A stretch of DNA of 64,000 nt from Tubulanus polymorphus (Eukaryota > Animalia > Nemertea): NCBI RefSeq assembly GCF_964204645.1, contig NC_134032.1, positions 9,474,275-9,538,274 on the forward strand. Reading direction: 5' to 3'. Positions 15,719 through 53,236 of the stretch are shown here, piece after piece. Under the pieces are notes generated by a model, which had not been told where the DNA came from, did no database searches, and saw only the letters and a program-made list of their open reading frames with translations. The translations under genes and the position numbers were made by a program. Every line of letters starts with the position of its first letter. Position 1 is the first letter of the stretch.

Positions 15719-16487
15719 TATTATCTCATATGCCTCGGAGAATAAAAGATGTAAACAAATAAATCAAATTTAAGATACCGAATGCTTATAAACATGGCGG
15801 AATACCCAACATATGGCACCAGCTTTCATTAACAAAACAATAGCTAATGGCCGCGCAATGAAAACTTCTAAAGCGAATATTGTCTAAAAATCTAAAACTG
15901 TTTATGACTGCGAATGCCACAATTTTGTATGGTTTATTTCCAATGTAAAAACATACCATCGTTGATCCAGCGTTAGCTGAAACTGTCGACGCAAGCCCCA
16001 ATAAATCATTTGCAATCGTCAGAATCCACCACAATGACGCAAAAGCGGACTTGAAGATAGCGCTTTGTGCTGTTAGTCGACCGAACCAGAACGGATATAG
16101 ATGACCATATCTAAAGGTAAGTCTGTCGCTTGCCGCATAACACACCCGCATCGAAAACAAATCGAGTGATTGAGACACTGGTTGCTCCTCTGAGGATTTA
16201 TCTTGAACTTTTGTAGGATCTCAGAGGTAACGGTGATTATAGTAACGCAAGCTGCCTCAATTATCAGTAATGCCAAACTAACAATACAGACAATCTACAG
16301 GACTGCACTGAAACCGGGTCTTACAAGAACTATACTTATCTTCTTCCAGTCGGCCAGATTTGTGGACAGATCAATGACATAAATCCTGGGGAACGTATGC
16401 TGCTTCCTCGTCAGTTGAGCCGTTGTCAACCAAACCTTTTTGATCCGCATCTTTATCTTCCGTTGTCAGTTTAAATTCATCGAGCTT
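15719..16487 (-). pseudogene. Decayed SLC18A-like transporter copy (psi-A)
   Basis: RLTFRYGHLYPFWFGRLTAQSAIF...ANAGSTMV in the ORF track; start codon mutated (AAG at 16485-16487), frameshifts, and a large internal deletion joining the TM5 region to the TM11 region near 15885. Confidence 0.88.
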
Positions 16488-17609
16488 GTCAGCTAACGGG
16501 TGCGGTACGAATATTTCAATGTCGATCGAGAGTTGTGTCTCCTCCCGTTATATGACTTAACCCAGTTTAAGATTAACCCCTACTGAAAAATATTGCTCGA
16601 AGATTTTTCCATGATGATTTATGGTCAAATGATATTGTGATTAGAATTGATTATTTGATTCCATAATATGGTTAAGATCAGGAAATCAAACTTGAATATA
16701 ATTATAAATCAAATTATTTTAGCCTAATAATTATCTTGAAATGTATATCCCCATTTTGTACTCTTACTTAAAGCTGTATCTTATCAACTGTAGACCTACT
16801 GAAAAAATGATGATTTAATCAATCTCTGATATATCTATAATTTTGATTTAGTTTTGAAATAGTTATGACTAGGTGCTCAAACTAAACATAACTATGATAG
16901 AATAACCAATCAATTATACTTATCATTGAAATGTTAGCATAATCATGACAAAATGAAAATGATTAAATATAGTAATTGTAAAATAATCTAAAAATAATTA
17001 AATAGAGTAATTGTTATTCAATGTAGTTATGATTAGGTGATTAAATTGATTAATCCACAAGATAGTTAACGATAAAAGATTTGAATGTAGTTAATGAATC
17101 AATAATACATCATTCATGTTTATTAAGAACAATATAAAATGACATTCATGTCGCAGATAAAACACAATGATTAGGTGTATACCCAACCAAAACTGTAGCT
17201 CATGGAATGCAAGTGTCTATATCGACCCTTCGTAGCTCAGGTGGTAAAGCTAGTAGAACCGGGTTCTTACCGGGCAGAGCTCGTAGAAGTTTCTACACGA
17301 AATAGAAACGGCAAATGCGGCCATCTGATTGGTCGGTGACGATGGACCGGGTTCTAAATATTCCGAGAACGAAAATGTGGTTTAAACGAGTATGAATTTG
17401 AATTCATACATTAGCTTAATTAAACACGCGTTTTTCGTTGGCGACAGATGTACCAGACTCAATCTCTGCCAATTAATTTGCATGCAGGAAAATCCTGTTT
17501 AACCGGCTTTTTCACGCGGTGCTATCTAACCGGTTATCCTTCGGAAAGGCTTCAAAATTTAGAATGATGCTCTAAAACCATCATTCAATCATCGCTGATA
17601 TTTATTACG

Positions 17610-18490
17610 TTACCATGCTTCTAAGGTCACCACAAAAATTGTAGAGTTCGAGACGGAAAGAAATATGTAAATAGAATTTGAAATACCGATACTAATAAAT
17701 GTAGCCGTATACCCAACGTACGGCTGTATGGAACCGATATTGAAAAGTAAGATAAAGACTGGCTTAAACATTCGAAGCGAATATTGTCTCTTGATCGTAT
17801 TTCTGATGAGCAATATCTGACACCAGCAAACTTAACGCTTATAAATAAATCAAATCCGTCAAATTGCAAAACCGAACATATATAACCATCGTATCGACAC
17901 AACATCAAAATTTCTACAATAATGTCTGATGTATTTTCGAATGCCCTGGATATAACTGTTGACCCGGACTTAGCCACGAATGCTTCCGCCGGTCCTACTA
18001 ACGTATGTGCATAATAATCTGCTGAATCCACCACAATGACGCCAAAACACACATGAAGATAGCGCTTTGTGCTGTTCGTAGACCAAACCAGAATGGATAT
18101 AGATGACCATATTTGAAGGTAAGTCTGCCACTCAGTACATTATCAAAAATCATTCCCGCATCGAAAGTAAATCGAGTAACACGGAAACCTTTACAGTTAC
18201 CCGTTGGTCCTCCGAGGATTTTTTTTTTAATTCTTGAAGAATCTCAGAAGTAACGGTGATTATATACCACTACGTCATGCTGCAGCACAGTAATGCCTAA
18301 CAAACAATACAGACAATAAAAACTACAGGACTGCACTGTGAACCTGGTCTTACAGGAACTAGAACCTCTCTTCTTCAGGTACTTTGTAGACAGTATCAAT
18401 GGTAGCTATGCATTCTGTTTCCTAGAAAATTGCGTCTTTTTCAACCAAATGTTCTCTATCTTCTCCGTAACTTTCAAACCATTGGGCACC
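17610..18490 (-). pseudogene. Decayed SLC18A-like transporter copy (psi-B)
   Basis: Fragments homologous to the intact copies (IQPYVGYTATFISIGI; tagatgaccatatttgaaggt; acaggactgcactg), with many indels and a central deletion. Confidence 0.85.
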
Positions 18491-18789
18491 ATCGCTGGCA
18501 TCTTTGGCCATCGGATTACCTTGTTTTCACCACACTCATTTTTTCTCATTTCTCGAATTTTCATTATTGCGATGCTTAGTATTTTCGATCATATCTGAAT
18601 AGATCGATCATGGTGTTTGAGGTAGGTGAACGTTCTGCTCTTACAGAACCGTTTATTGAAATAAGGCCCGGAAAAACTAGCATGTATATTACTGGCATGT
18701 ATTCTGATATACGGACTTGCTTTTTATGAATTATGTTTTAGTGGCTTAAATGTCTATGTAACTGTATTATTGTACGTACTGACGCAAAT

Positions 18790-19200
18790 TCTGCGTATAA
18801 GACCTCCACTGGAGACAAAACAGAGGAACTGTAGATTTTGCAATGGAACTGATCTTGAAGATGAATATCATTTTATTCTAAAATGCTCTAGATTTAGTAC
18901 ATAGATTTATTTATTCAGTTATTGAGCACACAGAATGGGAACGAATTTCTGAAATCAGGTGAATACTGTTGCATAGGTCTGAAAAGAATCCAAACATGTA
19001 TATGATTTAGTTTAACATCAGCGTTGGTATATCCTCGACTTCACTACTTTACAAATTGATGGGTGCCGATACAGAAACGGCGTTATATTTTCCGAAATGT
19101 ATTGTATCGCATTGAATGTACTGTATTTATAGAAATTTATTGTAATGAAATTAAGAACCATGATGGTCTATTTCAATAAACTTAAACTTAAAACTTAAAA
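18790..19200 (+). mobile_element. 3' fragment of non-LTR retrotransposon (RTE-X/CR1-like); duplicated at 25202-25640
   Basis: RNCRFCNGTDLEDEYHxILKCSRF zinc-knuckle-like ORF2 C-terminus; ends in aataaa(cttaaa)n tail. Confidence 0.75.
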
Positions 19201-19932
19201 CATATATTCTGACTCTAAAACAAGTTTTAGATTCCATAGTTCGTACATGTCAAACAGGTTTTTTATGAGAAGGATAAATTTAAAGCCCACTAACTTGTTT
19301 CGGTCAATCTAAAGATTGCGAATGGTCTCTGGAAGGTACATGAACGTATATTTCATTATTTCAATGAAAATAATACAGAAATACGTAGACTATGATAGAG
19401 TCAGTGAATTAACGATAGCAGTCTGAACAAGGCCAAAAAGACTGTACAAGCACTGGCAGATTTCTCGTGAAAAAAGTTAAACGATAAGTAACACGATTGA
19501 TATCATTCTAATGATTATTTTGCGCTTTGAAACTTACCACGAGAAATTCGATGAAGGTTCGAGTAAACAGACAAAATTTCACTACGAGCGTGTTTTGCCG
19601 ACACTTCAAGGGACGTAATTAGTAGGTTGTTACTGCGAAGTATTCGAGCATTAGCCCAGGTAAGGTAACAAATCTCAGTCGACACTTATGCTTTATGGCA
19701 CATCCTTTGATCCGTTAGGGAATTAGAAAAAAAACCATCTCTTGTGACTTGCGAAAATATTGCGATTATCAATCAATGAAAAAATTCCAAAAGCATCGCC
19801 GCCTACCATATCAACGTGCCAGTGCAGTTTGAGCAAAAGTAAAGTATAGTAAGGTAATGTAAAGTTTATGGAGCAGCCACCTTCGACTAGTTCGCCATCT
19901 GGCGGAAAATTATGTCAGTCACTGATCTCATA

Positions 19933-21315
19933 TTACGTCATCACCAGATTATCTCCTATCCCTCTAAGAATAGAAGACGTAAGCGAATAAACCAAATTCA
20001 AAATACCGATGCTTATAAATATGGCTGTATACCCAACATATGGTTGCATGGCACCGGCTATCATCAGCAAAACAGTAGCTAATGGCCGACCAATAAAGAT
20101 ATCTAAAGCCAGTATTGTCTCGTAATGTTGATCGTATTTCTGATCTGCAGCATCTGACAACCAAGAATAATAAAATCCACCGAACAGACTAAGTGCCAAC
20201 GTATAGATGCTATCCGGACCGAAAGCGTGCCAGATATTACTAATAAACGGATAAGAAAACATTGAAATTGTCGCTAGAAGGCAATAAATCATAGCGTAAA
20301 TCCATCGGTAGTTTCTAGTTTTAGACACAATAAATCCAAACATGTTTGTAGCAATAATGAAGAGAACTGCTGATGACAGTCTTACAGTCGCTAGTTTCCA
20401 ATTTGCCATCGTAAAACTGTCCAAAATCCATAATGGTAGCAACGTGTAATATGTGATATACATGGTACAATCCATAAAGTTGATGCCGAGTAAGACAACT
20501 GTTTGCGCGTCAGTGAGCATTGCTTTCACAACGCTGAGCTGGAATTGAGATTCTGTTTTTGAATCGCCGATGTTGTTCGGTATATCCACGAAGGTGCGAA
20601 TAAGAATCGTTATCCCTATCGCAGCAAAAAGGATCCAGAATGGAGTAGCGCGCCCGATCAATTGAACCTCGTACAAAGCAACCGCAAAACCAAAGGCGTT
20701 TCCACCAAATCTACAACTGTATATAACCGCAAATGCCAAGATTCGGTCCGATTTATTTTCAAAAGTAAAAGATAGCATCGTTGACCCGGCATTAGCTACA
20801 AATGCTACCGCAAGTCCTACTAACGTATTTGCAACCGCCAGAATCCACCACAATGACGCAAAAACAGAAATGAAGATAGCGCTTTGTGCTGTTAGTAGAC
20901 CAAACCAGAACGGATATAGATGACCATATTTAAAGGTGAATCTGCCACTCAGTACATTACCAAAAATCATTCCCGCATCGAAAGTAAACCGAGTAACGGA
21001 AACCTTTACGGTTACCTGTTGGTCCGCCGAGGATTTATTTTGAATATCCTGTAGGATATCAGAAGTAATGGTGATAATAGTACCACAAGTTGCTTCCATT
21101 ATCAATAATGCCAAACTAACAATACACACAATAACTACAGGACTGCACTGAAACCGCATCTTACAAGAACTACACTTTCCTTCTTCTGGTATATCACTGT
21201 GAGAGAGAGTATCAATAGCTCCGTATTCAGTTTCCTCGCCAGTTTCGCCATTGTCAACCAATTCTTTTTTATCCTCATCCTTATCTCCTGTCGTCATTTT
21301 AAATTCATTGAGCAT
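19933..21315 (-). CDS. Intronless MFS transporter, divergent SLC18A (VMAT/VAChT) family, copy 1 (460 aa)
   Basis: ~12 hydrophobic segments; long ungapped matches to recalled VMAT2 sequence (LPLWILDSFTMANWKLA ~ LPIWMMETMCSRKWQLG; IATNMFG ~ IGTNIFG; RWIYA ~ RWLCA; PFISNIWHAFGP ~ PFAKNIYGLIAP; VGYTAIFISIGILN ~ IGFPWLMTIIGIID). Confidence 0.9.
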   Translation of the reverse strand: MLNEFKMTTGDKDEDKKELVDNGETGEETEYGAIDTLSHSDIPEEGKCSSCKMRFQCSPVVIVCIVSLALLIMEATCGTIITITSDILQDIQNKSSADQQVTVKVSVTRFTFDAGMIFGNVLSGRFTFKYGHLYPFWFGLLTAQSAIFISVFASLWWILAVANTLVGLAVAFVANAGSTMLSFTFENKSDRILAFAVIYSCRFGGNAFGFAVALYEVQLIGRATPFWILFAAIGITILIRTFVDIPNNIGDSKTESQFQLSVVKAMLTDAQTVVLLGINFMDCTMYITYYTLLPLWILDSFTMANWKLATVRLSSAVLFIIATNMFGFIVSKTRNYRWIYAMIYCLLATISMFSYPFISNIWHAFGPDSIYTLALSLFGGFYYSWLSDAADQKYDQHYETILALDIFIGRPLATVLLMIAGAMQPYVGYTAIFISIGILNLVYSLTSSILRGIGDNLVMT

Positions 21316-23012
21316 CGTTACTGATGACTATACAACTGGTTGCGATTGGTTTCATGTGAATATCAGATCACACTCGATACTTACTGCAAAATAACGTTCA
21401 CAGTGGTTATCGATAAAATCTGTGATCGGATGTTACCAATTAGGTTTAGTTAGAAGTTCCATGGTGCTAATCTTGTCAAAGAATAATCAATACGTTCACC
21501 CCAGTCCACGTTCGATACATAGTAATGTTATTTTTTTCAAAGCATATGTTACTTGTGGTGACCTCCGTATAGCACAAGGAATGAGTGAATAAAAGCTATT
21601 TTTAGAATACCCCAAGTATACGGATTTTGTTAGACATTTATTACTGCCCTTTTATGGTACGAATTCGTAATGAATGATCGCGACACTGCTTAAATTGACC
21701 TCAAAGCGAACTTGCATTTTCTAAGTAGCACTGCTCATTACTGACTTTCTTTTCAATCTGCATGCAAATGCAAGCGGTAAATGCATGCACATGAGAAATT
21801 GCACATGAGAAATGAAAGGCGAACATAAAACAGAGAAAACTAAAACTGGTTTAATCAAAAGCTTTGATGAGCAGATGGGTTTTGAGATGAGATTTAAAAA
21901 TATCAATTGAAGGACTAGATTTAATTGGACTAGGTAAATTATTCCACAGTACTGGGGCAGAGTACGCAAAGCCGCCTCTACGCCTGGCTGAGACAGGATT
22001 TTTGCGGGGAATTACTTACCCAAGGTTACTTCGAGCCTACTGCCTAAACATGAAACTGAAGAATAATGCTATTCTTATGTCCAGTTTATAGTGAACGTCA
22101 CTTTGAGTTGTTTTAACTTCAAACAATCCCTAAAGGAGTTTTAATTATAGTATCAGCATAGACTTCATCGTATTTCGACGAAGTCTTCTAAAAGGCTCTT
22201 GAGTCCGTCCGGAAATGATTGCTCACAAAATGCTGCGTATCGATACTCTTCTTTTAATTGTACTGTACAATTTCGATGAGCGATTAGTGCCATTTAAACC
22301 ATTACCAATCAAACAGGAATCAATATGAAAAGAATTCTGCGAAAAGTATTAAGACGTATAGCGCTGGTCACTTCAGTGTATTTCCACCTTAAAGACTCCC
22401 ACAAAGCAAGTATTACCAATAGCATCATTATTTAATACAATTTCATTATCAGTTGTCTCGAAGAATAAAAGATATAAACGAATAAGTAAAATTTAAAATA
22501 CCGATGCTTATGAATATGGCTGTATACCCAACATATGGTTGTATGACTCCAGCTATCAATAGCATAACCGTAGCTAATGGCCGCCCAATAAAAACGTCTA
22601 AAGCCAATATTGTCTCGTAATGTTGATCGTATTTCTGATCTGCAGCATCTGACAACCAAGAATAATAAAATCCACCGAACAGACTAAGTGCTAATGTATA
22701 GATGCTATCCGGACCGAAAGCTTGCCAGATATTACTAATAAACGGATAAGAAAACATTGAAATTGTAGCTAGAAGGCAGTAAATTATAGCGTAAATCCAT
22801 CGGTAATTTCTAGTTTTAGACACAATAAATCCAAATATATTTGTAGTAACAATAAAGAGAACTGCTGATGACAGTCTTACAGTCGCTAGTTTCCAATTTG
22901 CCATCGCAAAACTGTCCATAATCCATAATGGTAACAGCGTGTAATATGTGATATACATGGTACAATCCATAAAGTTGATTCCGAGTAAGACAACTGTTTG
23001 TGCGTCAGTGAG
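20663..23012. repeat. Near-identical segmental duplication with 32970-35320 (offset 12307)
   Basis: 5' half of copy 1 + 1.1-kb spacer + 3' half of copy 2 equals 5' half of copy 5 + spacer + 3' half of copy 6; identical spurious ORFs at 21721/34028 and 22432/34739. Confidence 0.95.
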
Positions 23013-23809
23013 CATGCTTTCACAACAATGAGCTGGAATTAAGTTTCTGTTTTTGAATCGTCGTGGTTGTTCGGTATTTCAATGAAGGCACGCATGAGTA
23101 TCGTTAGCCCTAAAGCAGCGAAAATGATCCAAAATGGAGAAGCGCGCCCGATCAATTGAACCTCGTACAAAGCAATCGCAAAACCGATGGAATTTCCACC
23201 GACTCGAGAACTGTATATGACCGCAAATGCCACAACTCTGTCCGATTTATTTTCGAAAGCAAAATACACCATCGTTGACCCAGCGTTAATAACGAATCCT
23301 ACTGCCAGCCCTACTAACGAATTTGCAATCGTTAGAATCCACCAGAAAGACGCAAAAGCGGACATAAAGATAGCACTTTGTGCTGTTAGTAGACCGAACC
23401 AGAACGGATATAGATGTCCGAATTTGAAGGTAAGTCTACCACTAAGAAAAGTGCCAAAAAGCACTCCTGCATCGAAAGCAGATTTAGTAATCGAAACCTT
23501 TACAGTTATCCGTTGGTCCTCCGAGGATTTGTTTTGAACTTCCTTCAGGAGATCAGATGTAACGAAAATTACAGTTCCACAAGCTGTTTCCAGTATCAGT
23601 AAGACCATACTAACAATACACACAATAACCACAGGACTGCACTGAAACCGCATCTTACAAGAACTCGTCTTTTCTTCTTCTGTTACTTTAGAGAGAGTAT
23701 CAACAGCTCCGTATTCGGTTTTGTCGACAGTTGCGCCATTGTCAACCAATCCTTTTCTATCCGCATACTCATCTTCCGTCGGCACTTTCAGTTCATTGAG
23801 CAGCATCAT
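22449..23809 (-). pseudogene. SLC18A-like copy 2, split in the central loop (N-half 23039-23809, C-half 22449-23015)
   Basis: CAA>TAA at 23039-23041 plus a 1-nt deletion (agcattgc>agcatgc) near 23015; the C-half protein is identical to that of copy 6; otherwise no lesions. Confidence 0.88.
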
Positions 23810-23914
23810 TTGCGGTTGTGATGGGTGGTAATTGGTGAAATCGGTTGCTGGAAACATAACATAGATACGTCACATTTTTGTGAACGTCGCGGTAAAATAA
23901 AATGCAGGTCATTA

Positions 23915-24095
23915 CTAGATTATTATATGCTTCGGAGAAGATGCGATGTGAACAAATGAATATAATTTAGAATACCGATTTTTATAAATAATGCCCGTAT
24001 ACCCAAAACATGGTTGTATGGCTCCATTAAGCTAAAAATCGACTAACGAGAATATCAAAAGCGAATATTGTCTCGTAATATTAATCGCATTTGCA
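23915..24095 (-). pseudogene. Short C-terminal remnant of an SLC18A-like copy
   Basis: aataccgat...cgtatacccaaaacatggttgtatggctcc...gcgaatattgtctcgtaat resembles the TM11-TM12 coding sequence of the intact copies. Confidence 0.65.
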
Positions 24096-24463
24096 ATATG
24101 TTAATCTACCATTATTTGAATATACACCTAACTGCATACTTAACTTGATATTCTATTCATTGAACCCTTTTCGTAGTCTTTTTAACACCGTTAACTAACA
24201 GTAAGCTACTTGCCTATGTGCCAGTATGTCTTCTGGTATGAAACAAAATGAATTAAAAATAAATAATTTTCACACTAAAATGTTTCGATGTATAGGTTAG
24301 AAACTGAGGTCATATTTTTTTGTTTAGCGCGAAGCGTTCTATTCGCGTAGATATGTGACCGAGCTTGAACCCGGCTTGAGACTCGTCCGAGACATATCTA
24401 ATACCACAAACTCGTTGTACCAGCCTTTTACCGTTGAAATATAAATCCTCATTTCATATACCT

Positions 24464-27035
24464 TGACTTAACCCAGTTTAAGATTAACGCCCACTTAAAA
24501 ATATTGCTCGAAGATTTGTCCATGATGATTTATGGTCACATGATATTGTGATTAGAATTGATTATTTGAGTCCATAATATGGTTAAGATCAGGAAATCAA
24601 ACTTGAATATAATTATAAATCAAATTATTTAGCCTAACAATTATCATGAAATGTATATCCCCATTTCGTACTCTGTAGCTGTATAGTATCAACTGTAGAC
24701 CTACTGAAAAAATGATGATTTAATCAATCCCTGATATATCTATAATTTTGATTTAGTTTTGAAATAGTTATGACAGGCGATCAAACTAAACATAACTATG
24801 ATAGAATAACCAATCAATTATACTTATCATTGAAATGTTAGCATAATCATGACAAAATGAAAATGATTAAATATATAGTAATTGTAAAATAATCTAAAAA
24901 TAATTAGATAGAGTAATTGTTATTCAATGTAGTTATGATTAGGTGGTTAAATTGATTAATCCACAGGATAGTTATCAATAAAAAATTTGAATGTAGTTAA
25001 TGAATCAATAATACATCATTCATGTTTATTAAGAACAATATAAAATGACATTCATCTCGCAGATAATACACAATGATTAGGTGTATACCCAACCAAAACT
25101 GTAGCTCATGGAATGCAAGTGTCTATATCAACCCTTCGTAGCTCAGGTGGTAAAGGTAATAGAACCGGGTTCTTACCGGGCAGAACTCGTAGAAGTTTCT
25201 GCGCAAATTCTGCGTATAAGACCTCCACTGGAGACAAAACAGAGGAACTGTAGATTTTGCAATGGAACTGATCTTGAAGATGAATATCATCTTATTCTAA
25301 AATGCTCTAGATTTCACGATTTACGATGGAAATTTATAAAACCTTATTATTATAGATAACCATTTGTACATAGATTTATTCAGTTATTGAGAACACAAAA
25401 TGGGAACGAATTTCTGAAATCAGGTGATTACTGTATCATAGGTCCGAAAAGAATCCAAACATTTATATGATTTAGTTTAACATCAGCGTTGGTATATCCT
25501 CGACCTCACTACTTTACAAATTGACGGGTGCCGATACAGAAACGGCGTTACATTGAATGTACTGTATTTATAGAAATTTATTGTAATGAAATTAAGGACC
25601 ATGATGGTCTATTTCAGTAAACTTAAACTTAAAACTTAAAACATATTTCGGTCAATCCAAAGATTGCGAATGGTCTCTGGAAGGTACATAAACGTATATT
25701 TCATTATTTCAATGAAAATAATACAGAAATACGTGTAGACTATGATAGAGTCAGTGAATTGACGATAACAGTCTGAACAAGGCCAAAAAGGCTGTACAAG
25801 CACTGGCAGATTCCCCGTGAAAAAAGTTAAACGATAAGTAACACGATTGATATCATTCTAATGATTATTTTGCGCTTTGAAACTTACCACGTGAAATTCG
25901 ATGAAGGTTCGAGTAAACAGACAAAATTTCACTACGAGCGTGTTTTGCCGACACTTCAAGGGACGTAATAAGGTTGTTACTGCAAAGTATTCGAGCGTTA
26001 GTCCAGGTAACAAATCTCAGTCGACACTTATGCTTTATGGCACATCCTTTGATCCGTTAGGGAATTAGAAAAAAAAACAACTCTTGTGGCTTGCGGAACT
26101 TTTGCGATTATCAAACGATGAAAAAATTCCAAAAGCATCACCGCCTATCGGTGTTACCATATCAACGTGCCAGTGCAGTTTGAGCCAAAAGTAAAGTAAA
26201 TTATAGTAAGGTAATGTAAAGTTTATGGAGCAGCCACCTTCGACTAGTTCGCCATCTGGCGGAAAATTATGTCAGTCACTGATCTCATTACGTCATCACC
26301 AGATTATCTCCTATCCCTCTAAGAATAGAAGACGTAAGCGAATAAACCAAATTTAAAATACCGATGCTTATAAATATGGCTGTATACCCAACATACGGTT
26401 GTATGGCACCGGCTATCATCAGCAAAACAGTAGCTAATGGCCGACCAATAAAGATATCTAAAGCCAGTATTGTCTCGTAATGTTGATCGTATTTCTGATC
26501 TGCAACGTCTGACAACCAAGAATAATAAAATCCACCGAACAGACTAAGTGCCAACGTATAGATGCTATCCGGACCGAACGCATGCCAGATATTACTTATA
26601 AACGGATAAGAACACATTGAAATTGTCGCGAGAAGGCAATAAATCATAGCGTAAATCCATCGATATTTTCTAGTTTTAGACACAATAAATCCAAACATGT
26701 TTGTAGCAATAATGAAGAGAACTGCTGATGACAGTCGTACAGTCGCTAGTTGCCAATTTGCCATCGTAAAACTGTCCATAATCCATAATGGAAGCAACGT
26801 GTAATATGTGATATACATGGTACAATCCATAAAGTTGATTCCGAGTAAGACAACTGTTTGCGCGTCAGTGAGCATTGCTTTCACAACGCTGAGCTGGAAT
26901 TGAGATTCTGTTTTTGAATCGCCGATGTTGTTCGGTATATCCACGAAGGTACGAATAAGAATCGTTATCCCTATTGCAGCAAAAAGGATCCAGAATGGAG
27001 TAGCGCGCCCGATCAATTGAACCTCGTACAAAACA
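24464..27035. repeat. Segmental duplication of 16553-17295 joined to 18783-20680
   Basis: Colinear high identity; the junction at ~25200 (agaagtttct|gcgcaaattctgcg) skips ~1.5 kb present in the first copy. Confidence 0.92.
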
Positions 27036-33622: not shown

Positions 33623-34755
33623 CGTTACTGATGACTATACAACTGGTTGCGATTGGTTTCATGTGAATATCAGATCACACTCGATACTTACTGCAAAATA
33701 ACGTTCACAGTGGTTATCGATAAAATCTGTGATCGGATGTTACCAATTAGGTTTAGTTAGAAGTTCCATGGTGCTAATCTTGTCAAAGAATAATCAATAC
33801 GTTCACCCCAGTCCACGTTCGATACATAGTAATGTTATTTTTTTCAAAGCATATGTTACTTGTGGTGACCTCCGTATAGCACAAGGAATGAGTGAATAAA
33901 AGCTATTTTTAGAATACCCCAAGTATACGGATTTTGTTAGACATTTATTACTGCCCTTTTATGGTACGAATTCGTAATGAATGATCGCGACACTGCTTAA
34001 ATTTACCTCAAAGCGAACTTGCATTTTCTAAGTAGCACTGCTCATTACTGACTTTCTTTTCAATCTGCATGCAAATGCAAGCGGTAAATGCATGCACATG
34101 AGAAATTGCACATGAGAAATGAAAGGCGAACATAAAACAGAGAAAACTAAAACTGGTTTAATCAAAAGCTTTGATGAGCAGATGGGTTTTGAGATGAGAT
34201 TTAAAAATATCAATTGAAGGACTAGATTTAATTGGACTAGGTAAATTATTCCACAGTACTGGGGCAGAGTACGCAAAGCCGCCTCTACGCCTGGCTGAGA
34301 CAGGATTTTTGCGGGGAATTACTTACCCAAGGTTACTTCGAGCCTACTGCCTAAACATGAAACTGAAGAATAATGCTATTCTTATGTCCAGTTTATAGTG
34401 AACGTCACTTTGAGTTGTTTTAACTTCAAACAATCCCTAAAGGAGTTTTAATAATAGTATCAGCATAGACTTCATCGTATTTCGACGAAGTCTTCTAAAA
34501 GGCTCTTGAGTCCGTCCGGAAATGATTGCTCACAAAATGCTGCGTATCGATACTCTTCTTTTAATTGTACTGTACAATTTCGATGAGCGATTAGTGCCAT
34601 TTAAACCATTACCAATCAAACAGGAATCAATATGAAAAGAATTCTGCGAAAAGTATTAGAACGTATAGCGCTGGTCACTTCAGTGTATTTCCACCTTAAA
34701 GACTCCCACAAAGCAAGTATTACCAATAGCATCGTTATTTAATACAATTTCATTA

Positions 34756-36141
34756 TCAGTTGTCTCGAAGAATAAAAGATATAAACGAATAAGTAAAATT
34801 TAAAATACCGATGCTTATGAATATGGCTGTATACCCAACATATGGTTGTATGACTCCAGCTATCAATAGCATAACCGTAGCTAATGGCCGCCCAATAAAA
34901 ACGTCTAAAGCCAATATTGTCTCGTAATGTTGATCGTATTTCTGATCTGCAGCATCTGACAACCAAGAATAATAAAATCCACCGAACAGACTAAGTGCTA
35001 ATGTATAGATACTATCCGGACCGAACGCTTGCCAGATATTACTAATAAACGGATAAGAAAACATTGAAATTGTAGCTAGAAGGCAGTAAATTATAGCGTA
35101 AATCCATCGGTAATTTCTAGTTTTAGACACAATAAATCCAAATATATTTGTAGTAACAATAAAGAGAACTGCTGATGACAGTCTTACAGTCGCTAGTTTC
35201 CAATTTGCCATCGCAAAACTGTCCATAATCCATAATGGTAGCAACGTGTAATATGTGATATACATGGTACAATCCATAAAGTTGATGCCGAGTAAGACAA
35301 CTGTTTGTGCGTCAGTGAGCATTGCTTTCACAACTCTGAGCTGGAATTGAGTTTCTGTTTTTGAATCGTCGTTGTTGTTCGGTATTTTGATGAAGGCACG
35401 CATGAGTATCGTTAGCCCTAAAGCAGCGAAAATGATCCAAAATGGAGTAGCGCGCCCGATCAATTGAACCTCGTACAAAGCAATCGCAAAACCGATGGAA
35501 TTTCCACCGACTCGAGAACTGTATATGACCGCAAATGCCACAACTCTGTCCGATTTATTTTCGAAAGCAAAAGACACCATCGTTGACCCAGCGTTAGCTA
35601 CGATTGCTACTGCAAGCCCTACTAACGAATTTGCAATCGTCAGAATCCACCAGAATGACGCAAAAGCGGACATAAGGATAGCGCTTTGTGCTGTTAGTAG
35701 ACCAAACCAGAACGGATATAGATGTCCGTATTTGAAAGTAAGTCTACCACTAAGAAACGTGCCAAAGATCATTCCTGCATCGAAAGCAGATCGAGTAATT
35801 GAAACTTTTACAGTTATCCGTTGGTCCTCCGTGGATGTACTTTGGACTTCCTTCAAGAGATCAGATGTAACGATAATTACAGTTCCACAAGCTGTTTCCA
35901 GTATCAGTAATGCCAAACTCACAATACAGACAGTAACCACAGGACTGCACTGAAAGCGAATCTTATAAGAACTACACTTTTCTTCATCTGGTACTCTAGA
36001 GAGAGTATCAATAGCCCCGTATTCCATTTCCTCATCGGTTTTTCCAACCAGACTTTTTCCATCCGTATCTTCATCTTCCGTCATCATTTCAAATTCATTG
36101 AGCATCATCATATTACGGTTGACAATTAACGATGGATGCAA
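34756..36141 (-). CDS. Intronless SLC18A-like MFS transporter, copy 6 (likely start ATG at 36111, ~451 aa)
   Basis: Intact ORF; paralogs begin at MM(M/L)LNE, which corresponds to 36111; the ORF-track start at 36141 is not an ATG. Confidence 0.9.
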   Translation of the reverse strand: MHPSLIVNRNMMMLNEFEMMTEDEDTDGKSLVGKTDEEMEYGAIDTLSRVPDEEKCSSYKIRFQCSPVVTVCIVSLALLILETACGTVIIVTSDLLKEVQSTSTEDQRITVKVSITRSAFDAGMIFGTFLSGRLTFKYGHLYPFWFGLLTAQSAILMSAFASFWWILTIANSLVGLAVAIVANAGSTMVSFAFENKSDRVVAFAVIYSSRVGGNSIGFAIALYEVQLIGRATPFWIIFAALGLTILMRAFIKIPNNNDDSKTETQFQLRVVKAMLTDAQTVVLLGINFMDCTMYITYYTLLPLWIMDSFAMANWKLATVRLSSAVLFIVTTNIFGFIVSKTRNYRWIYAIIYCLLATISMFSYPFISNIWQAFGPDSIYTLALSLFGGFYYSWLSDAADQKYDQHYETILALDVFIGRPLATVMLLIAGVIQPYVGYTAIFISIGILNFTYSFISFILRDN

Positions 36142-36594: not shown

Positions 36595-36770
36595 CAGATT
36601 ATCATATGCCTCGGATAGTATAAGATGGGAACAAATAGATAAAATTCATAATATCGATACTAATGAATATGGCCGTATAACCAAAATATGGCTGTATGGC
36701 ACCAGCCAACAATATTGAGATGACCGCTTAAAACTGACTTACCATCTAAAGCGAATTGTCTCGTTAAGCG
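36595..36770 (-). pseudogene. C-terminal remnant of an SLC18A-like copy
   Basis: atgaatatggccgtataaccaaaatatggctgtatggcaccagc ... catctaaagcgaattgtctcgt matches TM11-TM12 coding sequence. Confidence 0.7.
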
Positions 36771-36928
36771 AGGAGCACGACTGTATTTTTTCGCCCGATC
36801 GCGGCGATTCAATTCGCCAGCGAATTCGCCGACGAATTTTATACGCCCGATACGAGCGGGCACATGTAGCCACAGGGACTTGTCACAATTGATAGTGAAT
36901 AAATAAAACCAGTATTAATGGCCAACCC

Positions 36929-37772
36929 CAGTTTCCCTGTATAATAAAAAAAAACAAGGGTGGCAACTAATCGTCAATCTGAAAATGAACTCTCCACTTC
37001 AATCGACTGTAATTCCAAAGATTCTCGATCGATTTATATAAAATCAGCTTTAATACAAACTAGAAGACTTTCTGCTTCCAACGAGCCTATAACCATTACA
37101 ACAAATATCTCACAACGAAATCGGCGTTTATTTACGGAAGATGTACAGATTCTATGGTGGAGAGCAAAAGGCAGTTTTTTCACTTCAAAGAAGGATTATT
37201 ATGCAAGATCTTTGGGATAACCCCAGCAAACCATACATATTTTGAAACCAGACGGTCATACCTTTCCAGCTGTATCATTTATTTGTATATTCCATGCAGT
37301 TACAGAGCTTAGTAGCTCAAAATACGAAAATGAGGCAGGAAACAGCAATTTCAAATCAAAGTCAAATTCAAAATAACTTTATTTGTAATAAATGTTAACA
37401 AACGTATTATAGGATTGAAAAACAATGATGAACATAAAACAATAAAAAAACATTGATGAAGAATTGGTTTGTTTGGGTTATCTCTAAAAATTTCACATAG
37501 AAAATATTGTTTCAATTGAAAAAACTGCCATCTTACCGTCCACCATAGAATCTGTACACCTCCGTAAATAAACGCCGATTTCGTTAAAAGATATTTGTCG
37601 TAGTGATGGTTATAGGCTCGTTGGAAGCAGAAAGTCTTCTAGTTTGTATTAAAGCTGATTTTATATGAATCAATTGAGAATTTTTGGAACTACAGTCGAT
37701 TTGTAGTGGAGAGGTCATTTTCAGATTGACGATTAGTTGCCACCCTTGTTTGTTTATTATACCGGGATACTG
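36929..37772. mobile_element. Foldback/MITE with ~250-bp terminal inverted repeats
   Basis: 36929-37180 (cagtttccctgtataataaa...acaagggtggcaactaatcgtcaatctgaaaatga...) is the reverse complement of 37520-37772. Confidence 0.8.
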
Positions 37773-37809
37773 AGGATCCCTGTATAGGGATATTCACACG
37801 AAACATTAC

Positions 37810-39321: not shown

Positions 39322-39545
39322 TGGAGCGGTGTTGCCGCGTGGTAAGAGTGTTCGGCTCTGGGAAGCCAGGTCGTGGGTTCAAAGCCCGTACATTGCCGTA
39401 GTGTCCTCGGGCAAGGCACTTGCCTTCATTGCCTCTCTCCAAACAGGAGTAAATGGGTACCTGGCCTGATAGATGACTCCTGAGCGCTTGTTAGCCACTC
39501 GGTGTTCCTTCTCCCCAGGGAAAGATGATACATGTTAGAGTAAAT
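39322..39545 (+). mobile_element. tRNA-derived CORE-type SINE followed by (ATC/GTC/ATT)n microsatellite to ~39655
   Basis: A-box-like gccgcgtggtaa, B-box-like gggttcaaagcc, then gtgtcctcgggcaaggcactt...cattgcctc...gtaaatgggtacc resembling the CORE domain. Confidence 0.72.
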
Positions 39546-40146
39546 CATTATCATCATCGTCGTCATCGTCATCGTCGTCGTCATCATTATTATTATTATC
39601 ATTAGTATTAGTATTATTAGTATCATTATTAGTTTTGTTATTATCATATAATATGATTAGGTACACTAAACTATACCAGGTGCGGATCCAGGATTTTTTC
39701 CAGGGGGAGTTCACAAAAAAATGTTAACGTTAAACTGTCACCTTAAGTCTCTAATAATAGGGGGCCTATACGGCATATTGTTTGGCTAAACATAAGAGAG
39801 AGAATATGGTACCAAGGTATATAACTTACGCTGTTTGTATACAAGAACGCACGAGGGAAATCTCTCCAACAAAGTTGACGTTTTAGCTCGTTTAACGGAA
39901 AAATTGTCCTGCTTACTCGTTGGAAATGATAGTATTGATGCTCAGTGAAACGAACATGTAAGAATATACTGCTTCTATCTCATCCGTTAATGCTGTAATT
40001 AGAACTTTAAACTCTCAAAGCCTCCAAATTTGAACTTGGTTATTTCCACACGGCCATATATAAACGCTCAGTACAGAGATTCAACACAATCACTCGTTCC
40101 GCTTGACTGCGTTTACAGCTTGTAACACTGACTATAAACCGCTTAA

Positions 40147-41345
40147 ATGGGGCCTAAACCACGAGGAGTCAATTCGACAGTAAATACTGCACCCAAAAAA
40201 AAGTCACAAAATTCGAAATGTAAATCGGTGGCAACTCCTAAAGATAGTGCTAGTAAGCAGACGGAAACAGAGCAGCCTTCTACTGAGGAAAACCGCAAAA
40301 AAGAGATCGCTCAGAAGGCTCCCTAAATACCTCTGGCGACGCTCCCAATCCATCAAAAAAATGCGCAACAGAGGATCATATGGGCAGTGAGAGCGAATAT
40401 CAAACAGACGCCGAGGATGATGAAATCTCCAACAAAATGCTACTAAATGAGATACGCAAGATGAAAATTACTCTCGAAAGGAAGATCGACTGTAAGTTTA
40501 ATCAGCTCAAACAAGAGATGGAGTTATACAAAACTGAAATCGAAAAAAACATTGATTTCCAAATACAAAATGCGAAAGACGAACTGAGAACCGAACTAAG
40601 AAACGAATTCAGTAGCAAAATATGCGATTTAGAAAAAACAACTACACGTCAGCCGAGTGGTCAAAGATTGCGATTGCTCGAAGACCGTCTAATCGACCAA
40701 GAAGCGAGAGCACGCCGTAGCAACCTTGTTTTTGTAGGAGTGCCAGAATCAGATATGAATTGCGAATTACAAATTCGCGAATCGCTTATAAATTCATTTC
40801 AGATGGATAGAACACAGGTTACAAATATGGTATTCCAGCGAACACATAGGAACCCTACTTACGTGGGCCCAAACACCAAGTTGCCGCGATCTATAACCGT
40901 TAAGTTTAGAGATTATTGCGATCGCACTTCAGTCTATCAAGCGCGGAAAAATGCAATTACAGATACGAAAATCCGAATTTATGAGGATTTTCCACTGGAA
41001 ATACGAGCGAAACGCAAAATTCTCCTCGATAAGCTACGTGAAATCATAGCGAAAGAACCCCACGTGAAAGCATTTGTTACGTATGATAGGTTAGTGTATA
41101 AATCAGATTCATTCAAAGTTATCGATAGCGAAATAGTGAAAGTTACGCGTTGGTCACCAGTGGGTAACGGAAAACCAAACATGAGATCACCACCGACAGG
41201 AGCGAATACGCACAGCCGAAGCCTGGCCGATCAGGCAGTCCGAAACCCCACTATCGCCGCAGAACACCAACCGAAAAACCAACAAAAACCGGTGGACAAT
41301 CCGACACCAACGGCAGAAAACCCGATGGACAGCACAAAAACATAA
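40147..41345 (+). CDS. LINE ORF1 (coiled coil + L1-type RRM/CTD); likely starts at ATG 40147 with a 1-nt frameshift near 40300, open from 40380
   Basis: Coiled-coil heptads followed by RRSNLVFVGVPE, HR...PRSITVKF and IYEDFP...R motifs typical of L1-like ORF1p. Confidence 0.85.
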
Positions 41346-41366
41346 ATGTAAGAGCCTGATGATACG

Positions 41367-44300
41367 ATGCTCACCCTAGATCAACCGTTAAATCCCAAAT
41401 CCCCCAATGCGAATAACAATCTCATCGATCTAAGCGATATAATTTCGAATGCGCGAGCCGCGTTAGAAAACGAATAGGAAACTGTCGAGCGTAACATACA
41501 ATCGTCTGGCCTTCCTAACTTTGATAAGTTGCGGTTATATAGTTTAAACGTCGGTGGATTAAAAACAAAGATAGACTCCTTGGATTTCAACACCTTTTGT
41601 ACACTCGCAGATATTATTGTATTAACAGAAACTAAAATTGATGAAACAGACGAATTATGGGTCAAAGAATATTTTGATACGCTTGGTTTCTATGTGGTAA
41701 TGAACAATAGATTTAAATTAGCTCTGAGAAAATCGGGGGGTATATTAATTGCCATAAGGAAAGATCTTAATAGCTATGTTAAAGTTCTACCAAAAACATC
41801 AAGCCATGTACTTTGGGTTGAACTGAATAAGTCGTACTTAGGTTGGGATAAAAACCTGACCTTGGGAGGTGTATACATACCACCGGTGTCGAGTAGTTAC
41901 GGAAAAACTGAAATGTTTGACCAACTAGATACAGATATGATTAATTTAACGTCAGATAATGATACATTTATTTGTTTATGCGGCGACTTTAATGCATATA
42001 CTAAAGAGTTACCGGATTACGTTGTGCATGATGAAAATTTGATTAATATTCTAGCTATAAATGAGATATTCCATGAATCTGCTAATAGTCTAGCTGTAAT
42101 GATAAATGGTGGTTTTTTAAGCAGAAAAAATAAGGACAAATACGTGAATAACTGGGGTTATCGATTATTAGAGCTGTGTAAAAATCATAATATATTTGTA
42201 GCAAATGGAAGATTAGGAAAAGATCAGGGCGTTGGAGAATTTACTTGTGTAAAGGGCGTAAATCATCATGTTGTGGATTATATTTTAATGTCAGCTGAAC
42301 TTTTCACGAAATGCTCTGATTTTAATGTTATGGACTTTGACCGTATACGGTCCGATGTTCATTGTGCTATTTATTGTACTCTAGCCTCAGATTGTAATAT
42401 TGAAAGGAATGAGTTTCTACCACCCAGAGAGAAGGGCAAAATCCGGTGGTCAAAAGATAAAGAGGGTCTCTTTAGGAATGCTATTGACCAACAGAAATTA
42501 AGTCAGTTAAATCTTGATCTAAACGATAACAAAATAAATTGTGAAACTGCGAATAATATTTTAACGGAGACATTGATTGGAGCTTCCGAACGTACAATGG
42601 GTAGAAAAAAGATTGTTTCAGAAAATAATCGTAAAAAGCCGTTTTTATCTGACCCTGAAGTTTTAAAACACCGAAAATGTTATAGGCGAGCAAGAAAGAG
42701 CTGTAAAAGACACCCAACACCACAACGAAGAACACACATGAATTTGGCTTATAGGAAATACAATTTGGCTATTAAAAAAGCGAAACAAAAATACCTTTTG
42801 GATCAAAATAACCTTTTGAAAAAACTGTCGAAAACCGATCCAAGAGCTTATTGGAAGTTTTTTTCTAAAGCCAAACAAAATGTTTGTAAAGCCTCCCTAT
42901 CTGACCTTTTTCATCATTTTTCAAAACTAAATCAAATACCAACAGACGACGACGATGATAGTAATTATTTTGATGTAAATAACTTTATCGATGTTGACAA
43001 TGACGACGCCCTCAATCGAGTCATTACGGAATCGGAAATTTCTAAATGTATAAAGAAACTTAAGAATAACAAGGCACCTGGATGTGACGAGATACTGAAC
43101 GAATTCCTTAAAACCTCTGAAGATATAATAATGCCCACTTTAGTCAATCTCTTTAATAAGGTCCTGGAAACTGGGATTATCCCTGAGAACTGGACAATTG
43201 GTAAAGTTACACCTATTTTTAAGAACAAAGGCGAGCCACGTGATCCGGACAATTATCGGGGAATCACATTACTGAGTTGTATTAGTAAGTTATTCACAAG
43301 TATATTAAACGATCGTCTCCATGAATTTCTTGAATCAAATGAACTCCTGAATAGAAATCAAGCCGGATTTCGAAAAAATCATAGCATTTTGGATCACATT
43401 TTCACCCTTCACTCAGTAATTGACACCCTTTTTAGTAAGAAGCGAAAGCTCTATTGTATTTTTATTGACTACCAAAAGGCATTTGATACAATATGGCGAA
43501 AGGCACTGTGGCACAAACTTATCTCAACAGGTATCACCGGAAATATCCTAAACGTAATTCATAATATGTATAAACATATCAAATCCATGGTTCACGTGCA
43601 GGGTCAATCCTCAGGTTGTTTTCTTAGTAACATAGGATTGAGACAAGGGGAAAATTTATCGCCAGTGCTTTTTTCTATATTTGTCAATGACCTTTTGCTT
43701 CATTAATTGAAAGTGGTTGTCAAGGGATTTCATCTCCCTTCGAAAACGAAGATCTATGGGTTCAGCTACTAGTTCTGCTGTACGCAGATGATACGATCTT
43801 ATTGGCCGATAGTGCAAGTGCACTTCAGAAAAACCTCGATATGTTGGTCGCTTATTGTAAAAGGTGGAAATTAGTAATCAATATTAGTAAAACTAAAGCC
43901 ATTGTATTCGAAAAAAGGAAGTCTATTAGACAACCCGTATTTAATATCGATGGAGTATTAATCGAAACTGTATCTGAATTTAAATATTTAGGTGTGCTTT
44001 TTAATTATACAGGAAACTTTGCAAAATGTAAAAAGCTGATTTGTGACCACGCAAAGAAGGCGCTTATATTTGTTCTTAAGAAAGTTCAACATTTTTCTCT
44101 TGACTTTGATACTGCTTTCCAAGTCTTTGACGCAATGGTTGGATCGATTTCAACATCTGGTTGTGAGGTGTGGGGCTTTGGAAATTTTGATGTTATTGAA
44201 AAAATTCATTTAACATTTTGTACATATCTGCTAAGCCTCAAGAGGTCAACACCAAATTTGATGATATACGGTGAGACAGGAAGGTTTCCATTTGAAATTC

Positions 44301-44944
44301 GTATCAAAGTTCGTATGGTAAAATTTTGGGGACACTTGATCCTGCATGAAGAGACATACTCTGGTAAAATGTACCGCATTCTTTATAATAGTCATTTAAA
44401 TGGTTCGCAAAGTAAATGGATATCCTGTATCAAATCAATCTTACAGAATTGTGGTCTTGGTAATATATGGTTGGAACAAACTTTTCCGAATATTCCCTAC
44501 CTTGGGGAACTCGTAAAACTTAGATTAGAAGATCAATTTAAACAGACATGGCATGGATCGATGGTACTATCCTCTAAATTAGATACGTATAGAATATTTA
44601 AAACTGATTGGGGACAAGAAAAATATCTTTCATCACCTCCACGAAGTTTAAGAATCTCACTATGTAGATTTAGATGTTCCAACCATAAATTACCAATAGA
44701 GACTGGTAGATATGAAAACAAACCACGGAACGAACGAGTTTGTAATAAATGTAACGAGAATACTATTGGGGACGAATGTCATTTCATACTGAAGTGCGAA
44801 TTTTTCAACGCTTTTAGAATTTTGTATATACCTAACAGATATAGAATTGGCGCAAATCATTATAAATTCAAGCAATTGCTCAGTAATGAAAACCTGTATT
44901 ACAGTCTATCTAAATACATTACGACTGCTACACGGTTGTTATAG
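41367..44944 (+). pseudogene. LINE ORF2: apurinic endonuclease + reverse transcriptase + C-terminal Cys/His motif; TAG at 41475 and 1-nt frameshift at ~43703
   Basis: NVGGL, LTET, GDFNA, VDY, SDVH (APE); KAPGCD, NYRGITLL, QAGFR, FIDYQKAFD, GLRQGENLSP, LLYADD (in the shifted frame at ~43775-43792), FKYLG; SNHKLPIETGRY...CNKC...DECHFILKC. Confidence 0.93.
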
Positions 44945-45204
44945 CTAGGGCTATTAATATGTATAAATTTGCCAGCTTTTATATTTATACTATTCATACT
45001 ATTTTGTTATGCTCGGAAAAATTGTATATCTTTTTTGGAGCAATAAACTAAACTAAACTAAACTTTTGGTACTGTCCATCCGCAATGTCTTGAGTAAATT
45101 CCATCAAGAAAACGATTAAAAAACTTTTTTGATAGCTGAGCGGGGGGGGGGGGGGCACGACCCCTTACACTCGCCCTCTGGATCCGCACCTGCTATACGA
45201 TACT

Positions 45205-45640
45205 AGAAAGTAAGTCTACCACTGAGAGAAGTGCCAAAATCAGTCCTAAATTCCTTGAAAATCTAGAAACCTTCATAGTTACCTGTTGGTCCTCCGAGGA
45301 TTTATTTGGAAGTTGTTCTAGGAAATCAGGGTTGACGACGATTCAGTACCACAAGTTGGTTGCGATACATAAGATTAAATGCAAAATGTCACTTGGTAAT
45401 GTAAAATTACATTCTTTTTGCTTGAGCAATCCGTTTTCGAAGCATTATATTCGCAGCGAATTCTTTTTGTTCAGCAATCGGTTTTGGTGTGAAACTATCG
45501 GGATTTATTATTCTAAGTAGTAAATTGGTTAATTAAATCGGCATTTTAATGATATTGGGATCACTCGATAAGCTTGAATTTCAAATGTTATGACGTAACC
45601 AAATTTTGTATCATTAGGAGTGATATGGCGTTGCCGTATG
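45205..45640 (-). pseudogene. TM1-TM2 remnant and upstream flank of a further SLC18A-like copy
   Basis: gtaagtctaccactgagagaagtgccaaaatca...gttacctgttggtcctccgaggatttattt matches N-half coding sequence; taaattggttaattaaatcggcatt...aagcttgaatttcaaatg matches the upstream flank of copies 3/4. Confidence 0.75.

Positions 45641-49398: not shown

Positions 49399-53236
<3,838 letters not shown>

Follow-up and report, generated by a model that had tools for sequence, protein, structure and literature searches.

A tandem array of intronless, VMAT-related transporter genes in the nemertean Tubulanus polymorphus

The window analysed here, a stretch of 64,000 nucleotides from the nemertean Tubulanus polymorphus (RefSeq assembly GCF_964204645.1, contig NC_134032.1, here C8, positions 9474275-9538274), contains a tandem array of intronless genes whose products resemble the vesicular monoamine transporters (VMAT) of the SLC18A family. 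The array spans 15.7-36.7 kb of the window, lies on the minus strand and comprises four intact open reading frames (ORFs), two near-complete dead copies, two decayed copies and three remnants, which were located by an ORF listing, by tblastn of an intact protein against the window and by self-blastn. An earlier note, made from the letters of this DNA alone, had reported these counts (with at least three remnants), their coordinates and their common strand, and the three methods bear it out. The intact genes encode proteins of 451-460 amino acids with pairwise amino acid identities of 81-91%, and all four match the Pfam model MFS_1 (PF07690) of the major facilitator superfamily (MFS) and no other Pfam family, at 53-62 bits where the cut-off is 33.4.

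Each of the intact genes is a single exon. Gene 1 (19933-21315, minus strand like all copies described below; 460 amino acids, MFS_1 E-value 1e-15) and gene 2 (26288-27670; 460 amino acids, 3e-14) are 85% identical in amino acid sequence, gene 3 (32261-33622; 453 amino acids, 8e-17) is 91% identical to gene 1, and gene 4 (34756-36111; 7e-16) encodes 451 amino acids when read from the ATG at 36111, its frame being extendable to a TTG at 36141 in the ORF listing. The open frame of gene 1 continues for only four codons upstream of its ATG (464 versus 460 amino acids), which leaves no room for an upstream coding exon, so that the coding region is indeed a single exon. The genes on either side are multi-exon: to the left an OSBP-domain gene on the plus strand, with exon matches from before the window to about 5147, and to the right an adenylate-kinase gene on the minus strand, with exon matches at about 49504-51456. 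The lack of coding introns in the copies amid intron-rich neighbours, which had likewise been read from the letters, is thus upheld.

The first, near-complete pseudogene (22449-23857) is 94% identical in DNA to gene 4 and is split into ORFs of 272 and 188 amino acids, while the second (29380-30696) was delimited by tblastn and its lesions were mapped. A decayed copy at 15711-16484 retains residues 2-206 and 400-459 around an internal deletion and carries several stops (4) and frame changes; tblastn finds it in three frames at 49-71% amino acid identity, and its DNA is 73-83% identical to that of the intact copies. The other decayed copy (17667-18393) retains residues 37-205 and 415-443, spread over tblastn frames -1, -2 and -3, with a DNA identity of 74-79%. 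A remnant of a 3' end (23919-24092), 69-70% identical in DNA to the 3' ends of the intact genes, also matches the locus of a dispersed family copy (L032) at C8:8.85 Mb, and a C-terminal remnant (36605-36727) corresponds to residues 413-453 (tblastn identity 56%, E 6e-9). The third remnant lies beyond a long interspersed nuclear element (LINE), at 45197-45361 with a flank reaching to 45640 (tblastn E 1.6e-5; blastn identity 70-73%). Its coding similarity covers residues 81-119 at 45232-45342, and the decayed neighbour of the dispersed copy (L032, 1273-1894) matches 45238-45640 at 72-82%.

Copies that are 85-95% identical to each other may be falsely expanded or mis-joined during assembly, and the source project's own short-read contigs are fragmented in the array, none of them covering 23784-24335. 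Raw Illumina DNA reads of an independent sample and study (X5) were mapped at an identity threshold of at least 97% over the interval 19000-24500. The mean depth is about 8x, where about 7x is expected (1,934 Mb read over a 268-Mb genome), so that the read-depth check proposed in the earlier note returned approximately the single-copy level with no collapse, and no indel difference from the assembly was seen in these reads at the frameshift of the first pseudogene. Loose read ends do occur in the independent DNA reads at 19190, 19871-19912 and 21815, and depth over 23232-24500 is about half that of the rest of the interval. Taken together, the half depth and the loose ends suggest a haplotype or copy-number difference between individuals rather than an artefact, half depth being unlike absence. 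Since the copies are moreover set apart by many fixed substitutions and distinct lesions, an artefactual array is scarcely credible.

The mode of growth of the array can be read from its sequence. The block 19958-23818, which holds gene 1 and the first pseudogene, and the block 32265-36121, which holds genes 3 and 4, are 95.3% identical over 3,863 bp with the intergenic DNA included, which means that a two-gene unit was duplicated as DNA. Both pseudogenes have an identical CAA-to-TAA stop at codon 255 and an identical 1-nt deletion at codon 263 (at about 23015 and 29946), and the second has in addition lost 2 nt at codon 131 and 42 nt at codon 154. The common stop and frameshift imply either that a gene already dead was duplicated or that a tract carrying the lesions was spread by gene conversion. 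Mosaic structure is also apparent from sliding-window identities: the first 650 nt or so of gene 1 are 98-99% identical to gene 3 and the rest 95-98% identical to gene 2, and the second pseudogene matches gene 2 in its 5' part, at 95-99% identity. The dispersed copy, at C8:8.856 Mb and thus 618 kb off, has an amino acid identity of 78%, and because 420 bp of the DNA upstream of it, as well as a decayed copy next to it, are found in the array too, its dispersal was likewise DNA-level. The array has been shaped by segmental DNA duplication of a two-gene unit, by exchange between copies through unequal crossing-over or gene conversion, and by pseudogenisation. The birth-and-death process proposed earlier is therefore well documented, in the pseudogenes with their common stop and frameshift, in the decayed copies and remnants and in the two-gene unit of 3.9 kb at 95%.

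Retroposition as the mode of array growth was rejected, since DNA from the flanks and from between the genes was duplicated together with them, and the suggestion of a retroposed array is dropped on the same ground. The intronless state is not a property of the array in particular: the genes of families A and B and the more distant VMAT-like genes of this genome (see below) are all single ORFs, and so is the VMAT-like gene inspected in the nemertean Lineus (a 1,422-nt gene for 473 amino acids). An intronless state common to dozens of VMAT-like genes and to the Lineus gene must be older than the array, and the VMAT-like group as a whole may go back to an early retroposition.

A number of other features were noted in and around the array. 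A non-coding repeat of 744 bp occurs twice inside it (16553-17294 and 24464-25200, 95% identity by self-blastn), and may be a transposable element or belong to an earlier unit of duplication. Immediately upstream of the array lies an inverted repeat of about 310 bp (36926-37233 and 37465-37775, 86% identity), which may be a foldback element or one resembling a miniature inverted-repeat transposable element. The LINE that separates the array from the outlying remnant is on the plus strand (40380-44944), with an ORF1-like frame of 321 amino acids without a Pfam match followed by an ORF2 with endonuclease and reverse-transcriptase domains, the latter broken into frames of 725 and 380 amino acids. 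Finally, an ORF of 127 amino acids without a Pfam match is found on the minus strand at 14266-14649.

The array is one cluster of a much larger family. A six-frame search of the T. polymorphus genome gave 71 matches, and the loci were scored with a hidden Markov model (HMM) of the family on ATG-initiated ORFs of at least 300 amino acids; the counts given here are lower bounds. What we call family A comprises at least 21 intact single-ORF genes (437-533 amino acids, more than 500 bits) distributed over C7, C8, C9 and C10; besides the array, tandem clusters occur at C8:16.386-16.398 Mb and C8:11.17-11.19 Mb. Family B comprises five genes (508-520 amino acids, about 250 bits on the family HMM), namely a tandem of four nearly identical intronless ORFs of 508-513 amino acids at C4:1035232-1052707 (L021, L035, L036) and a single gene of 520 amino acids at C12:999966-1001063 (L020). 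In RefSeq family B bears the label 'VAChT-like', after the vesicular acetylcholine transporter (VAChT), yet it scores 98 bits against VMAT2 and 45 bits against VAChT. At least four members of family A are annotated as RefSeq proteins, under names that include 'synaptic vesicular amine transporter-like'.

More distant again are about ten to a dozen intronless VMAT-like ORFs of 448-557 amino acids, several of them paired, which score 44-65 bits (C5:4.864-4.869 Mb; C6:17.78, 18.29, 20.62 and 20.94 Mb; C9:4.457 and 5.132 Mb; C4:3.07 and 21.61 Mb; C1:23.92 Mb; C3:9.66 Mb). A canonical VMAT gene with several exons is present as well, on the plus strand at C2:10309604-10315546, where no fewer than six exons were matched to a molluscan VMAT with per-exon identities of 43-87%. 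The VAChT orthologue is an intronless ORF of 588 amino acids on the minus strand at C4:3856107-3857261 (L025:1341-3107), which scores 596 bits against human VAChT and 379 bits against VMAT2. With all groups included, the SLC18A-like complement of the genome nears 40 genes. A decayed family copy was also observed on the opposite (plus) strand at C8:9570420-9571199, about 32 kb past the end of the window, as fragments of 33-42% identity with stops.

Outside Tubulanus, a HMMER profile built from seven family members and run against 1.84 billion representative proteins yielded 214 matches at E <=1e-3, only three of which fell below 1e-30, and these three are all from T. polymorphus (two of family A and one of family B). 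No close relative outside Tubulanus was thus found among the 1.84 billion representatives, with the limit that any relative at least 50% identical to a Tubulanus representative would sit hidden in its cluster, so that close Tubulanus kin could be masked. The next match is a 'synaptic vesicular amine transporter-like' protein of Lineus longissimus at 103 bits, which means that the RefSeq proteome of this heteronemertean is without the family, and the matches after it, in fish, birds, molluscs, annelids and insects, are again VMAT or VMAT-like. Among 20 matches that were looked up, the 16 with usable names were all vesicular amine or acetylcholine-transporter-like proteins or plain MFS proteins; no SLC18B1 and no other named MFS family occurred among these 16, and the top vertebrate matches were VMAT1 or VMAT-like. 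A word-indexed homologue search returned three T. polymorphus proteins only and missed an annotated paralogue (P0181), so it was not used to argue for absence. We found no paper describing such an expansion in the searchable literature. As far as the representative search shows, families A and B would be restricted to Tubulanus. The expansion had been called lineage-specific from the window alone, which agrees with the representative search, where Tubulanus is the only source of close matches; the array does not stand alone, however, but forms a single cluster within a family that numbers at least 21 intact genes.

By sequence, by profile and by predicted fold, which agree, SLC18A is the nearest known family. 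Gene 1 by itself matches the VMAT1 and VMAT2 entries of the PDB at about 1e-17 and VAChT at 5e-6, and a profile of 21 family A sequences scores 111 bits against VMAT2 (E 5e-31) and 46 bits against VAChT (E 2e-11), the only other MFS structure matched being EfpA (19 bits, E 0.004). An AlphaFold2 model of gene 1 from a 69-sequence alignment has twelve long helices and high predicted confidence (pLDDT 88.4, pTM 0.86). When this model was submitted to Foldseek, ranks 1-35 were VMAT2 and VMAT1 (TM 0.7-0.88), followed by VAChT and then by LmrP and NorA, and a look-up in the ESM Atlas returned nothing but generic MFS neighbours, headed by an arthropod VMAT cluster. A closer relationship to SLC18B1 than to SLC18A is unlikely, judging from the matches. 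Horizontal transfer was considered and rejected, all the nearest relatives being animal SLC18A-like proteins.

In unrooted maximum-likelihood trees family A is monophyletic (support 100), and a long stem leads to the clade that it forms with family B (support 100). This A+B clade adjoins a grade of orphan spiralian VMAT-like proteins from Lineus, Owenia and other Tubulanus genes, and it lies outside a split with support 100 in which canonical VMAT, VAChT and the arthropod VMAT-like proteins come together. Approximately unbiased (AU) tests on 36 sequences under LG+G4, also unrooted and open to long-branch effects, rejected trees in which A+B groups exclusively with VAChT (p 0.003) or with canonical VMAT (p 0.0006). 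The worm's multi-exon VMAT is not in these trees, where molluscan and vertebrate VMATs stand in for it. On this evidence A+B would be neither VAChT-derived nor a recent duplicate of VMAT, and the trees give no dated origin. The earlier note had proposed an SLC18A-like family, possibly derived from VAChT, and had asked for a phylogeny. The SLC18A-like placement survives, by profile and predicted fold and, unrooted, in the trees; the derivation from VAChT has to be given up in view of the profile scores (111 bits for VMAT versus 46 for VAChT), the true VAChT orthologue at C4:3.856 Mb and the AU result (p 0.003). Membership of SLC18A in the strict sense also fails: fold and sequence are close, but the cavity residues, the luminal loop, the C-terminal tail and an exclusive clade with VMAT or VAChT are all missing.

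SLC18A proteins are low-copy neurotransmitter loaders, in which the residues that couple protons to amines are conserved from worms to humans. In VMAT2 the titratable cavity residues D33, K138, R189, E312, D399 and D426 take part in the proton and substrate network (PMC10959523), the main polar network consisting of D33/N34/K138/Q142/R189/Q192/S196/S197/S200/D426 (PMC10959523), and even the mutation R189K nearly abolishes ligand binding (PMC10959523). We mapped these positions by a HMMER alignment to human VMAT2 (8ucj_A, native numbering) and by an independent MAFFT alignment of 69 sequences, and cavity positions were taken from the alignment to VMAT2 and not from the geometry of the predicted model. 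Five of the six titratable residues are replaced in family A, where only the equivalent of D426 survives, D405 being present in 20 of the 21 sequences. D33 has become V/L/I/M (M73 in gene 1), K138 has become F/Y (F112), R189 has become N/H/D/S (N163), E312 has become Y/F (Y290) and D399 has become G/T/N (G379). Among the other positions that were mapped, N34 is replaced by E/N/K/Q (E74 in gene 1), D262 by T (T236) and D460 by N/H/D/E (N440). A new near-invariant arginine, R410, follows five residues past D405, and in the window clade the gate position F334 of VMAT2 is also an arginine (R312). A pocket with four acids and two bases in VMAT has thus become one with a single conserved acid and one new base in family A, to which the window clade adds a Glu and an Arg.

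This loss appears to have been stepwise. Among 43 other VMAT-like proteins D33 is present in 34, K138 in 36 and R189 in 39, and family B keeps D33 while it has lost K138, R189, E312 and D399, which suggests that K138 and R189 were lost first and D33 afterwards. The same residues bear on whether the genes could be extra copies of ordinary neurotransmitter loaders that retain VMAT or VAChT function, as the best database and structure matches (VMAT1/2) and the RefSeq name 'synaptic vesicular amine transporter-like' would have it. With D33, K138, R189, E312 and D399 all replaced, including the position whose mutation nearly abolishes ligand binding in VMAT2 (PMC10959523), and with a separate canonical multi-exon VMAT at C2:10.31 Mb and a VAChT orthologue in the genome, we regard this as very unlikely. 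The AU tests, which reject an exclusive clade with either transporter, also speak against it.

The accessory regions have changed as well. VMAT and VAChT have a long glycosylated luminal loop between transmembrane helices (TM) 1 and 2. In the gene 1 model all that is left of this loop is a short turn at residues 95-100, between helices 59-94 and 101-130, the HMMER alignment passes over residues 69-141 or so of VMAT2, and 18 of the 21 family A proteins have one N-x-S/T sequon in the short loop. The cytoplasmic C-terminal tail of VMAT and VAChT holds dileucine and acidic sorting signals; 18 of the 21 family A proteins stop two residues after the Arg that closes TM12 and have no such tail. A YG[AST][ILMV] motif is found in 21 of 21, within an N-terminal tail that is otherwise variable and disordered. 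What the family has is a complete MFS scaffold of VMAT ancestry without the substrate and proton network of VMAT and without its trafficking appendages.

Family A resembles VMAT1 and VMAT2 (SLC18A1/A2), its best match in sequence and fold, in the 12-TM architecture of DHA1-type MFS proteins, in a GxLTxxxG motif after TM2, in D269, P294 and R337, the counterparts of D291, P316 and R357, and in the TM11 Asp. It differs from them in an identity of only about 20%, in the absence of the five cavity residues, long luminal loop 1 and C-terminal tail, and in having more than 20 intronless copies, whereas VMAT has one or two copies and the worm's canonical VMAT is multi-exon. With VAChT (SLC18A3) it has in common an intronless coding region and, by prediction, the same fold, in contrast to its far lower profile score and to the existence of the worm's VAChT orthologue as a separate gene. 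Nearest to family A in the unrooted trees are orphan VMAT-like proteins of spiralians, among them XP_064623809 and XP_064651620 of Lineus longissimus and CAH1798159 of Owenia. The Lineus gene inspected is also intronless, and E312 and D399 are already variable among these proteins, but most of them keep D33, K138 and R189 (K138 is Gly in one Lineus protein), whereas all three are gone from family A and two of them from family B, and the orphans' scores against the family profile are about 100 bits or less. Insect portabella is grouped with such orphan VMAT-like paralogues of SLC18A. To our knowledge, none of these orphan proteins has been amplified to dozens of copies.

Selection on the genes was assessed in two ways. 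Pairwise Nei-Gojobori comparisons of the five intact genes of the window clade gave ratios of nonsynonymous to synonymous divergence (dN/dS) of 0.28-0.41 at dS of 0.16-0.38, which indicates purifying selection on the intact copies. Across the family, 21 paralogues with identities down to 39-55% are all full-length and have about 40 invariant and about 60 near-invariant positions, and such retention of the frame across diverged paralogues is a stronger argument for function than dN/dS.

We consider that the window most probably holds a young tandem cluster of Tubulanus-restricted, intronless, VMAT-related MFS carriers for some small molecule other than a monoamine, a reading to which we give a probability of roughly 0.6. 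As far as residue patterns can tell, proteins that have lost the residues coupling amines and protons are likely to have a substrate other than a monoamine. Family A proteins would then be alternating-access carriers for a solute other than a protonated monoamine, and not canonical monoamine or acetylcholine/H+ antiporters. An aromatic, hydrophobic and charge-poor pocket with one TM11 Asp-Arg pair would take a small amphipathic solute, and proton coupling, if retained, would go via the single TM11 Asp, D405. The invariant YG[AST][ILMV] signal, which is of the YxxPhi type, probably sorts the proteins to an endosomal, lysosomal or granule membrane. Among paralogues several cavity positions vary (E/N/K/Q, N/H/D/S, G/T/N/D, R/L and N/H/D/E), and a paralogue-variable cavity combined with fast gene turnover suggests substrate diversification of the kind seen in transporter families for detoxification or defence; toxins, pigments or dietary xenobiotics might be such substrates. 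Vesicular or lysosomal sequestration of a non-canonical solute, as the earlier note supposed, would be plausible, and nothing here indicates a particular solute, compartment or tissue.

Several points weigh against this reading. A search for expression evidence came up empty: none of the runs listed is recorded as RNA, a run of 2015 (X7), guessed to be RNA, gave no contig on the stretch, and another run (X2), whose kind is not on record, covers genic and intergenic DNA alike. The four ORFs of the window were not found as exact sequences in the protein collection, and may be unannotated or annotated differently. The substrate, the coupling and the compartment are all matters that we infer. The assignment of cavity residues relies on an alignment at about 20% identity, in which the positions of D33 and K138 (TM1 and TM2) fall outside the confident HMMER stretch, though MAFFT agrees. 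Pairs that include a pseudogene have a dN/dS of 0.40-0.44, near that of the intact pairs, which fits very recent inactivation or the import of sequence from live copies by conversion; gene conversion blurs the selection signal, and a low dN/dS is therefore weaker proof of function for any single copy.

Several of these points also feed a different explanation, in which the ORFs are largely non-functional or do not transport, being either silent frames of recent duplication that only youth and gene conversion have kept open, or receptors or chaperones with an MFS fold. The missing RNA evidence, the absence of the window ORFs as exact sequences, the dN/dS of pseudogene pairs as low as that of intact pairs and the disappearance of the whole coupling network all speak for it. 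The 21 paralogues, at 39-55% identity, are nevertheless all full-length with conserved positions, including helix-breaking Gly and Pro and loop motifs, and youth cannot explain open frames of that kind. At least four members are annotated in RefSeq, moreover, and the model is confidently that of a complete 12-TM transporter. We hold this explanation to be distinctly improbable.

If the genes do encode carriers for a non-monoamine solute, one special case, which develops the idea of the earlier note, is that they could be dedicated sequestration or efflux pumps for a defensive or accumulated small-molecule toxin or pigment, for example a guanidinium toxin such as tetrodotoxin (TTX), in epidermal or glandular vesicles. 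VMATs are known to protect cells by sequestering 1-methyl-4-phenylpyridinium (MPP+). The loss of the monoamine and proton network from a fold that is kept under purifying selection, the fast gene turnover and the cavity residues specific to paralogues are all consistent with such a role. So are the fold neighbours beyond SLC18A, the bacterial DHA1 multidrug exporters LmrP and NorA, whose hydrophobic, promiscuous pockets with few membrane-embedded acids would be the closest functional analogy to the charge-poor pocket of family A, despite identities of 12-16% and far lower sequence scores (EfpA, at E 0.004, is the sole exception at the sequence level in the PDB). For TTX itself, a review gives an immunostaining record from T. 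polymorphus and a chemical one from T. punctatus (PMC6410017). The T. polymorphus record is by immunostaining only, however, with locality and sample 'not stated' in the table (PMC6410017), and the loss of acids from the pocket disfavours a strongly cationic substrate such as TTX. We judge this special case unlikely. A bolder proposal goes further still, and we offer it as a long shot: families A and B would form a new class of SLC18-derived carriers, amplified in palaeonemerteans, that load a defensive or accumulated molecule into secretory or lysosome-related vesicles. Here the Asp/Lys/Arg/Glu machinery for protons and amines would have been abandoned, the cargo would be a toxin, a pigment or a mucus component, and the pockets of the different paralogues would amount to a chemical-defence repertoire that could be set beside the gene families for detoxification in other animals.

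The young cluster of VMAT-related carriers thus belongs to a strongly derived variant of a known transporter family. RefSeq already contains part of this variant, but its names for these proteins mislead: neither 'synaptic vesicular amine transporter-like' nor 'vesicular acetylcholine transporter-like' should be taken to imply neurotransmitter function. The array itself is a clean small case of birth-and-death evolution with gene conversion, including the duplication or conversion of a gene that was already dead. One animal lineage has kept the VMAT fold, shed nearly the whole charge network together with both accessory regions, and multiplied the gene more than 20-fold. If these genes are expressed, they would constitute a natural experiment on the VMAT scaffold without D33, K138, R189, E312 and D399, and would give a lead to a vesicular or efflux substrate in a chemically defended phylum.

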